Assembly: GCA_002269645.1 (NCBI GenBank)
Contig: NIVC01004755.1
Span: forward strand, 1 to 36,063
Length of the DNA: 36,063 nucleotides
From: Macrostomum lignano
Lineage: Eukaryota
Direction of reading: 5' to 3'
The translations under genes were made by a program, and so were the position numbers. Of this stretch, positions 29,786 to 32,313 are shown in pieces. Position 1 is the first letter of the stretch; each line of letters starts with the position of its first letter. Under the pieces are notes generated by a model. The model searched no databases. It saw nothing but the letters and a program-made list of their open reading frames with translations, and was not told the origin of the DNA.

Positions 29786-30829
29786 GCCGCTCCTTTTTGG
29801 GGAATTCCGCGCCAGCGCCAACCCTAAGCGCTTCCCGCGATGGCGCGCGTCCGGCTTCCGTTCATGCCTGGGTAGCAATAGTAATAATGCTTGCCTTACC
29901 CACTAATTAAAGCTCCAGTTAACCCTCTTCCCCGCATCCTTGCTTTTGTCATTTTTTTGCTTAATAGGCCCGTCTGTATCATTTCCAATAGGCAACTACA
30001 AGAGCTCAAGCCAGAATTACTACTTGTTTGTCCGCTTTCCAGTAGTGACCTCAGCTCGCTGGCTGTCCTGCCGCAAATTTCAGCCTCTGCTCCCCCATGT
30101 TATTAAAGCCCTGTGCCCAATATCAGCAGCTCTGATTGCCGCAGACTGCGCTAATCCTCCCAGGTTGTCACGGTGCGGATTGCGTAACCTTTACATGTTT
30201 TTAATCGCCTAACTGACGCTATGGACTTCTTATGTTTTTAGCCTTCTTACAGTACAGTCTGATGCGGCTGATGCTGCATGTCTCTGGCCGGGCGATAGAC
30301 CGGGGATTTTAGCCACTTTTTCCACCGCGGCACCAGCCTTTTTAATTAACAAATTATATTTATCTGTATTTATACTGCTATCAACTATTGTGTGCTTGTG
30401 TAAGCCTTTAGCACAAATATTCTGATTAACAATATATATTATTGACTGCGCAAAATCTTGATGCCTGCATGGAGAATACAAATATAATTCCTATTAATTA
30501 CACAATTGTTCACTTTGATTTAACAAGCAGTTAGAGGCTTAGGGCAGTTTTTAGCTTGAAATTATCAGACTACTCAGAGTAGTTCGGGTTATTCAGGGGA
30601 CACCGCTATCACCCAAACCCTTAGCTATGTACGGTAGGTATGTTCGCTATATATTATATGTACTTACAAACTTAGTACATATAATAATATCTACGTTTAG
30701 TAATGTAAATTTAATGTAAATTAGGCTTTAATTTCTGGCCTAATTTTATCTATTTTTCATCCGCTACTTTGTTCGATGTTTAATGTTTAATTGTAAACAT
30801 TTAAGCACTCGTTCCTTTTCATTTTGCAG

Positions 30830-32313
30830 CGTTCCAAATCAAGGTCGCCGCCACAGCGGAGGAGATCGCGATCGCCTCAGCGTAGAAGGCAGAGGTCACC
30901 GCTGAGGAGGTCAAGGTCGAGATCACCGAAAAAGTCAGGGTCGCGGTCACCTCAGCTTAGAAGGCAGAGGTCACCGCTGAGGAGGTCAAGGTCGAGATCA
31001 CCGAAGAGGTCAGGGTCGCGGTCGCCTCAGCGTAGAAGGCAGAGGTCACCGCTGAGGAGGTCAAGGTCGAGATCACTGAAAAAGTCAGGGTCGCGGTCAC
31101 CTCAGCGTAAAAGGCAAAAGTCACCACTCAAGAGGTCAAGGTCGCCACCTCCGCAGAAGTTCTCTAGCAGCTCGAAGGACGCCTCCGGCTCCTATTGGCC
31201 CCGCGCCGCAGGCTGGGTAGGCGCCGAGTCTGACGAGTTCTGGTCAGAGCGGCGCCAGGCCCGTGAGCGGCTGGCCCTGGGCCTCACTGCGGAGCTGTGG
31301 GGCCGCTCACCGACTCCGGAGCGGCTGGCCCGGCAGCGCCTGACCGAGGAGGTCGAAGCGGAGCGGCAGAGGCTGCGCGCGGAAGCCGCCGCCAACGGCG
31401 CCAGTTCCGACTCATCGGACTCCGGCAGTGGCAAGAAAAAGTCCAAGAAGGACAAGAAGTCCAAGAAGAAGAAGAAGAAAAGTGATAAGGAAAAGAAAAG
31501 AAAGAAGCAGAAATCTGCCGACAGTGAGTTGGCCAAGTTGCAGCGGAAGCTGGCCAAGCTGGAGTCCCGCCAGCCCGCTGCGGCAGCCGCTGCTGTCACC
31601 AATGATGACGACGAGGACGAGGACAAGCGCGCCTTCCTGGCCCGCGTGCGGGCCGAGCGGGAGGCCGCCCAGGCCGCTGCCGAGGCTGCAGCCGACGCGT
31701 CGCTGGTAAGCTGATGCTGACTGTCTTTCCTCGGGATGATCCTTAATTACAGATAGGATTTTACGTATTCATACATGAGTACTGAATTAGCGACTAAACT
31801 TATCATCGAATTGTTTGGGTGCACGCAGCAAATCAGCCGGTACACCTGCCTAATCAACACTTAGCAATTTTGGAAGCTTACAAATAAAATTAGCCCAGGC
31901 GGAACTGTCAGCAGCCAGTTGCAAATAAAAACCGCCCCCCCCAGCCCGGCCCCAGCCTGCCTGCTGTGCTTCTGCCCGGCGCTGACCAGAGGCTGGACTT
32001 CGGCCAGGCCCTGCTGCCAGGCGAGGGCGCCGCCATGGCCGCCTACATCGCCGAGGGCAAGCGGATTCCCCGTCGCGGTGAGATCGGCCTGGAATCGGAC
32101 CAGATCACCGCCTTCGAGAGCCTTGGCTTCGTGATGTCGGGCAGTCGACACCGCCGCATGGAGGCCGTCCGCCTGCGCAAGGAAAACCAGATCTACAGCG
32201 CCGACGAGAAGCGCGCGCTGCAGAAGTTCAACAATGAGGAGCGCAGCAAGCGGGAGGCCAAGATCCTCGCCCAGTTCAAAGGCCTCATCAGCAAGAAGAT
32301 GGACGAATCGTGA
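30830..32313 (+). CDS. NKAP: NF-kappa-B-activating protein (RS-rich N-terminus, K-rich basic region, conserved C-terminal domain). Exons 30830-31705 and 31945-32313; initiator Met not found.
   Basis: C-terminus [30 protein letters not shown]...[32 protein letters not shown] is the NKAP signature. Phase-0 GTAAGC...CAG intron 31706-31944; acceptor TTTTGCAG ending at 30829. Confidence 0.95.
30872..31150 (+). repeat. Coding 75-bp (25-aa) tandem repeat, ~3.7 copies, in the NKAP RS domain
   Basis: Unit starts at 30872, 30947, 31022 and 31097; peptide [25 protein letters not shown]. Confidence 0.9.

Follow-up and report, generated by a model that had tools for sequence, protein, structure and literature searches.

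The window, a stretch of 36,063 nucleotides of Macrostomum lignano DNA, carries on its plus strand a two-exon gene for an NKAP-family protein (exons 30830-31705 and 31945-32313, with a 414-aa product). Upstream on the same strand lies a gene for an ankyrin-repeat protein (22364-29563), whose stop codon ends at 29563. The features in and around the NKAP gene are as follows, where SL stands for spliced leader:

29564-30829, plus strand: intergenic region and putative outron, from the ankyrin gene stop to the NKAP acceptor, GC 0.24-0.45
30400-30404, plus strand: donor-like site gcttgt|GTAAGC, the only GT[AG]AG in the intergenic region
30788-30796, plus strand: two in-frame TAA stops, which close the NKAP frame upstream
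30812-30829, plus strand: polypyrimidine tract and acceptor ttccttttcattTTGCAG, the proposed SL trans-splice acceptor
30830-31705, plus strand: NKAP exon 1, 292 codons without Met, GC3 0.74
30866-31144, plus strand: tandem repeat of the RS domain, 75-nt unit (25 codons), 3.7 copies
31706-31944, plus strand: NKAP intron, 239 nt, phase 0, gtaagc...ccccccag, GC 0.44
31945-32313, plus strand: NKAP exon 2, Nkap_C domain and stop, GC3 0.86

The first NKAP exon encodes an RS-rich N-terminus, a conserved EFW..RR..RE..WG.SP block and a K-rich region. It ends at 31705 with the donor CTG|gtaagc, and the acceptor at 31944 (ccccccag|) is in phase. The GP.LP motif, which spans the junction of the two exons, aligns with orthologues, and the stop codon is a TGA at 32311-32313. 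In a profile search, the product matched the Pfam domain Nkap_C (PF06047) at residues 310-408 with an E-value of 2.8e-46 (156.3 bits, where the gathering threshold is 25; the match spans positions 3-101 of the 102 in the profile), and a protein database search returned 2146 NKAP-family homologues at E<=1e-10. We checked the architecture in an alignment with 8-9 family proteins of flatworm, annelid and environmental-assembly origin. The M. lignano protein resembles the family in its RS-rich N-terminus, its lysine-rich middle, its C-terminal Nkap_C domain with an invariant core and its length of 414 aa. It differs from the NKAP / NKAP-like / CG6066 family in an RS region that consists of 3.7 copies of a 75-nt repeat. 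Moreover, the family members listed all start with their own Met, whereas the M. lignano gene lacks a start codon. The 75-nt tandem repeat (91% matches) encodes most of the RS domain, a region that seems to have expanded recently and in frame; a repeat of this kind would disrupt short-read transcript assemblies.

The best database match of the gene model is a UniRef entry from Macrostomum lignano, A0A1I8FUV7 (P0001), named “Nkap_C domain-containing protein”, which matches residues 70-414 of the model with 100% identity over 345 aa. The next matches are about 42% identical. A preceding reading based on the letters of the window (hereafter the sequence-only reading) had inferred a flatworm origin, and the complete identity to this entry places the DNA in M. 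lignano. The entry begins RQRSPLRR..., within the third RS repeat, and is thus 5′-truncated and without Met, as is to be expected because annotation pipelines yield such models when no start codon is found. It is probably a 5′-partial model owing to the absent genomic start codon and the tandem repeat. Two further close NKAP matches from sequencing-run assemblies (P0005 and P0002) have ordinary 5′ UTRs and their own ATG and do not come from Macrostomum. The NKAP matches in JGI records likewise belong to unrelated species and are uninformative on the M. lignano start. Exact look-ups in the protein collection gave no match for the 415-aa and 414-aa products, for the exon ORF or for eight further ORF products of the window, and P0001 is recorded there without an encoding contig. 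NKAP is not listed in the supplements of the M. lignano papers PMC5173321, PMC5730564 and PMC5816591.

A genome-encoded AUG for the full-length NKAP protein is not possible at this locus. Translation of 30830-31705 gives 292 open codons and no Met, just as the sequence-only reading had described its first exon. In-frame TAA stops occur at 30788-30790 and 30794-30796, which is 42 and 36 nt upstream of exon 1, and no in-frame ATG lies between these stops (30788, 30794) and 30830. Two apparent starts were considered and rejected: the in-frame ATG at 30776 precedes both TAA codons (MFNV followed by a stop), and the TTG at 30824, called as a “start” in the mechanical ORF list, follows a bacterial rule and sits within the acceptor. 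Given the position-specific composition of exon 1, the chance of encountering no ATG in 292 codons is P ~0.035, and the missing Met in exon 1 is only mildly unusual in statistical terms. This statistic matters less than the position of the first Met of the product, which is residue 323, inside the invariant core of the conserved Nkap_C domain.

Comparison with orthologues indicates how much of the protein is missing. In the alignment, their N-termini take the form M-(1-11 aa)-R.RSRS (e.g., MGRSRSRSRS, MARSRSRSRS and MGRHRSRSRS), and a Met placed in front of RSKSRSP is flush with them; the conserved EFW.RR..RE, WG.SP and GP.LP blocks all fall within the open frame. Set against the M-(1-11 aa)-RSRS starts of the orthologues, the NKAP model lacks no more than its Met. 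The earlier claim that 414 aa is about the full length of NKAP, with little beyond Met lacking, therefore stands. An alternative would be that only a short protein is made, starting at Met323 in exon 2, and that the upstream open frame is untranslated. Met323 is indeed encoded by the first genomic in-frame ATG. However, initiation there would truncate Nkap_C because Met323 sits in the invariant core of the domain, and the 322 codons upstream of it are open, have a GC3 of 0.74 and include the conserved blocks just named. We find a protein of this kind scarcely credible.

The boundary of exon 1 is sharply defined. The exon opens directly after ttccttttcatTTTGCAG|CGT, with the acceptor TTGCAG|CGT at 30829|30830, and the GC content jumps from 0.30 over the 100 nt that precede 30830 to 0.61 over the next 100 nt. 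The sequence preceding 30830, cgttccttttcattttgcag (also given as cgttccttttcattTTGCAG), is 82% pyrimidine over positions -18 to -2. Among the AGs in 30600-30900, the one before 30830 has the highest pyrimidine content and is the sole match to [T/C]TNCAG, which is the top motif at 21,754 SL trans-splice sites of M. lignano (PMC8629364). The sequence-only reading had called the acceptor strong and placed the exon start in phase 0, and its pyrimidine content and its fit to the trans-splice motif of the species agree with that description.

Upstream of this acceptor, we searched for exons that could provide an initiator by tracing every ATG in 29000-30829 to every phase-0 GT, with GT[AG]AG taken as the donor consensus of the species. 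No ATG in this interval reaches a phase-0 GT[AG]AG donor; the exhaustive scan thus extends the by-eye search of 29790-30829, in which the sequence-only reading had found no ATG exon with a good phase-0 donor. The donor-like site at 30400 cannot supply the initiator, because the stretch in phase with it is bounded upstream by a stop at 30343 and contains no ATG. The best candidate among the upstream ATGs opens a stretch of 26 codons at 30627-30704, with the donor AAT|GTAAAT at 30705.

An unrecognised cis-spliced upstream exon that gives the ATG and joins the 30830 acceptor in phase 0 would nevertheless explain the same gene structure. The acceptor would suit cis-splicing equally, the mini-exon at 30627-30704 does end in phase 0, and a distant 5′ exon may lie beyond the single window. 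However, the mini-exon has a GC content of 0.26 and a GC3 of 0.23, as compared to 0.74-0.86 in the real exons, its donor is not GT[AG]AG, and its peptide (MYGRYVRYILYV...) is hydrophobic and unlike any NKAP N-terminus. Furthermore, the sole consensus donor, at 30400, has no in-phase ATG, the region 22364-29563 is taken up by another plus-strand gene, and the orthologue N-termini allow no additional residues. Taken with these points, a cis-spliced initiator exon appears unlikely.

The missing start could also be an artefact or a defect: an assembly indel or substitution might hide a genomic ATG, or this copy might be a duplicate damaged at its 5′ end, in a genome that is partly duplicated. The assemblies of M. 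lignano are built from long reads, and chromosomes are duplicated in the DV1 line (PMC8629364). Moreover, the ATG at 30783 is offset from the NKAP frame by a single base, with T-runs after it, and a 1-nt insertion in these T-runs before 30830 would bring it into frame. Against this explanation, 30783-30829 has 30% GC and consists of a typical polypyrimidine tract and CAG, which is not coding-like, and the N-terminus that would result (MFNCKHLSTRSFFILQ) is without counterpart among the orthologues. Nor is this NKAP copy decaying, because its 414-codon ORF is uninterrupted, its GC3 is high and the Nkap_C core is invariant. We regard an artefact or a damaged copy as very unlikely.

M. lignano has a single described SL of 35 nt, CGGTCTCTTACTGCGAAGACTCAATTTATTGCATG (PMC8629364). 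The 3′ end of this SL, ...TTATTGCATG, reads ...TTGCATG, and its sole ATG is formed by the last three bases. A scan of metagenome contigs with the 23-mer from the SL 3′ end retrieved six contigs, five of which are SL-bearing transcripts and one of which is genomic. In the genomic contig (Ga0302322_100095745, L008, positions 625-735), the SL is followed by GTAAGACACC... (SL|GTAAGAC) and by the Sm-like site ATTTTTAG; owing to the SL|GTAAG boundary and the Sm-like site, we assign it as an SL RNA gene. The premise of an AUG-ending SL, on which the sequence-only reading stood or fell, is therefore borne out by the published SL (PMC8629364) as well as by this gene. Neither an SL RNA gene nor an SL fragment was found in the 36,063-nt window.

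When the SL is joined in silico to position 30830, the product reads ...TTGC ATG CGT TCC AAA..., i.e., ...IYCM|RSKSRSP, in the NKAP frame, and the combined frame of SL and exon 1 is open without a stop through to the TGA at 32313. The predicted start M-RSKSRSP is thus exactly in frame, as had been anticipated from the letters. In the mechanism that we propose, the NKAP pre-mRNA would be trans-spliced at TTGCAG|CGT (30829|30830) to the 35-nt SL, giving ...CTCAATTTATTGCATG|CGTTCCAAATCAAGGTCG as the mature SL/NKAP junction. The last three bases of the SL would then be the first AUG after the cap in the mature NKAP mRNA. This AUG would read straight into exon 1 as M-RSKSRSP..., followed by 414 further codons to the TGA; the hypothetical fragment of SL peptide and NKAP N-terminus would be ...SIYCMRSKSRSP. 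As the gene encodes no initiator of its own, full-length translation would need trans-splicing. With its U at -3, the SL AUG lacks a strong Kozak context.

On the strength of the frame, the acceptor and the orthologue N-termini, we consider it most likely that the SL RNA donates the NKAP AUG through joining to the first exon; we infer both SL addition at the 30830 acceptor and a start of translation at the SL AUG. The general rate of SL trans-splicing among conserved M. lignano genes is 45% (PMC8629364), and the anatomy of the locus makes trans-splicing of NKAP considerably more probable than this prior. NKAP is a conserved nuclear gene, probably an essential one, and is likely to be wholly reliant on SL trans-splicing for its initiation codon.

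The SL would be dispensable if the NKAP mRNA escaped trans-splicing and its translation began at a near-cognate codon. Three such codons (AAG at 30803, ATT at 30821 and TTG at 30824) are in frame within 30797-30829, and non-AUG initiation is known in eukaryotes (PMC9851317). However, ribosomes on the unprocessed leader would meet out-of-frame ATGs first, for instance the one at 30783, which opens an ORF of 40 codons, and all three candidates sit within the polypyrimidine tract and acceptor. Moreover, a near-cognate start is needless, as the SL of the species gives an in-frame AUG. It is less plausible still than an assembly artefact, and both a near-cognate start and a start at Met323 are much less economical than a start donated by the SL.

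The SL-donated start proposed for NKAP is a case of an established mechanism, not a new one. Every flatworm SL reported has ATG at its 3′ end (PMC12582326). The claim of the sequence-only reading that a flatworm SL AUG can act as initiator has a documented basis: use of the flatworm SL 3′ AUG as initiator Met was described by Cheng et al. 2006, as cited via PMC9851317 and PMC3510090, and is established for Schistosoma and Echinococcus; PMC3510090 also relates that the Schistosoma SL AUG is able to initiate in vivo. For S. mansoni, according to PMC9851317, 28% of trans-spliced cDNAs have the SL AUG in frame and >40 cDNAs need it. SL-AUG initiation has also been reported in E. granulosus and S. 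japonicum and was termed “phylogenetically conserved in the Neodermata”, and the argument from matching N-termini was likewise used there for the SL Met of E. granulosus cDNAs (PMC3510090).

The NKAP locus shares with the known SL-AUG mRNAs an SL exon that ends in AUG right before a GU donor, an acceptor in phase 0 with the main ORF, the lack of a genome-encoded in-frame AUG, and an N-terminus that resembles those of orthologues only with the SL Met. The Schistosoma and Echinococcus cases rest on SL-bearing cDNAs, whereas the M. lignano NKAP junction is derived from genomic sequence alone. The conservation of SL-AUG initiation was described within the Neodermata, whereas M. lignano is a free-living macrostomorph outside this group, classed as a basal flatworm in PMC5730564. 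SL-AUG initiation is not a topic of the M. lignano trans-splicing paper (PMC8629364); therefore, NKAP may be an unreported example for this species.

If the proposal is correct, initiator use of the AUG at the SL 3′ end is not limited to parasitic flatworms. This would support the idea that initiator use helps to hold the AUG invariant in flatworm SLs. NKAP would then also be a conserved gene that cleanly exemplifies, in a flatworm model open to transgenesis, how translation can require trans-splicing, and its expression would report on trans-splicing there in an all-or-none manner. Furthermore, ORF callers and gene finders that trim the SL will call such genes 5′-partial; the SL-supplied AUG gives a complete NKAP model of M plus 414 aa.

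Genes that start only at the SL AUG appear to form a minority class, because none of the five recovered SL transcripts does so. These transcripts (L004-L007 and L009, from sample Ga0316592) carry the Macrostomum SL at their 5′ ends, and in 5/5 of them the frame opened by the SL AUG closes after 2-41 codons, and the real ORF starts at an ATG further downstream. From their predicted N-termini only, the five mRNAs look like VDAC, IDH, CNBP, GAPDH and a possible arginine kinase. Public JGI metagenome and metatranscriptome records thus include Macrostomum-type material; the first 30 nt of NKAP exon 1 had no match in the metagenome collection.

The genomic neighbourhood of NKAP also invites comparison with the operons of M. 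lignano, for which a repeat-adjusted spacing threshold of 1 kb and a modal spacing of ~100 bp have been reported (PMC8629364). As with downstream genes of such operons (PMC8629364), NKAP has a same-strand upstream gene and an acceptor of the trans-splice type. An AATAAA at 29780 in the intergenic region, 3′ of the ankyrin gene, is likely to be the poly(A) signal of that gene. The distance to the NKAP acceptor is 1,266 nt from the ankyrin stop codon and ~1,050 nt from the AATAAA, and the spacer contains no tandem or dispersed repeat that could be subtracted. This spacing of ~1.05-1.27 kb reaches or exceeds the 1-kb threshold and is well above the ~100 bp mode, which makes NKAP a borderline candidate for the downstream gene of an operon with the ankyrin gene.

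The exons of the upstream gene at 22364-22921 and 24558-24968 have Ank matches in Pfam. The encoded protein contains an RVxF-like RMVRF motif near its N-terminus and ends in ...CCSVM, a CaaX-like box; it may be a PPP1R16-like (MYPT3/TIMAP) protein. Four large minisatellite arrays lie within the span of this gene, at 22970-24120, 25019-25770, 27377-27852 and 28065-29002, with units of 40/157, 35/136, 23 and 27 nt, respectively, and 20-35 copies each. The array with the 27-nt unit is open in one frame, in which it encodes PVPAMSHSD repeats, and might therefore be coding.

Just downstream of NKAP, the minus strand at 33405-35585 carries an ORF for a reverse transcriptase (RVT_1, E 1.8e-15) next to one of 412 aa, and RT-like ORF fragments are present around 2358-4562 (2.4-4.5 kb). 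Both regions are retroelement remnants. Finally, a purine-rich low-complexity region of ~1.7 kb at 12000-13700 is strongly strand-asymmetric, with GC skews of +0.72 and +0.54 and AT skews of +0.47 and +0.44.
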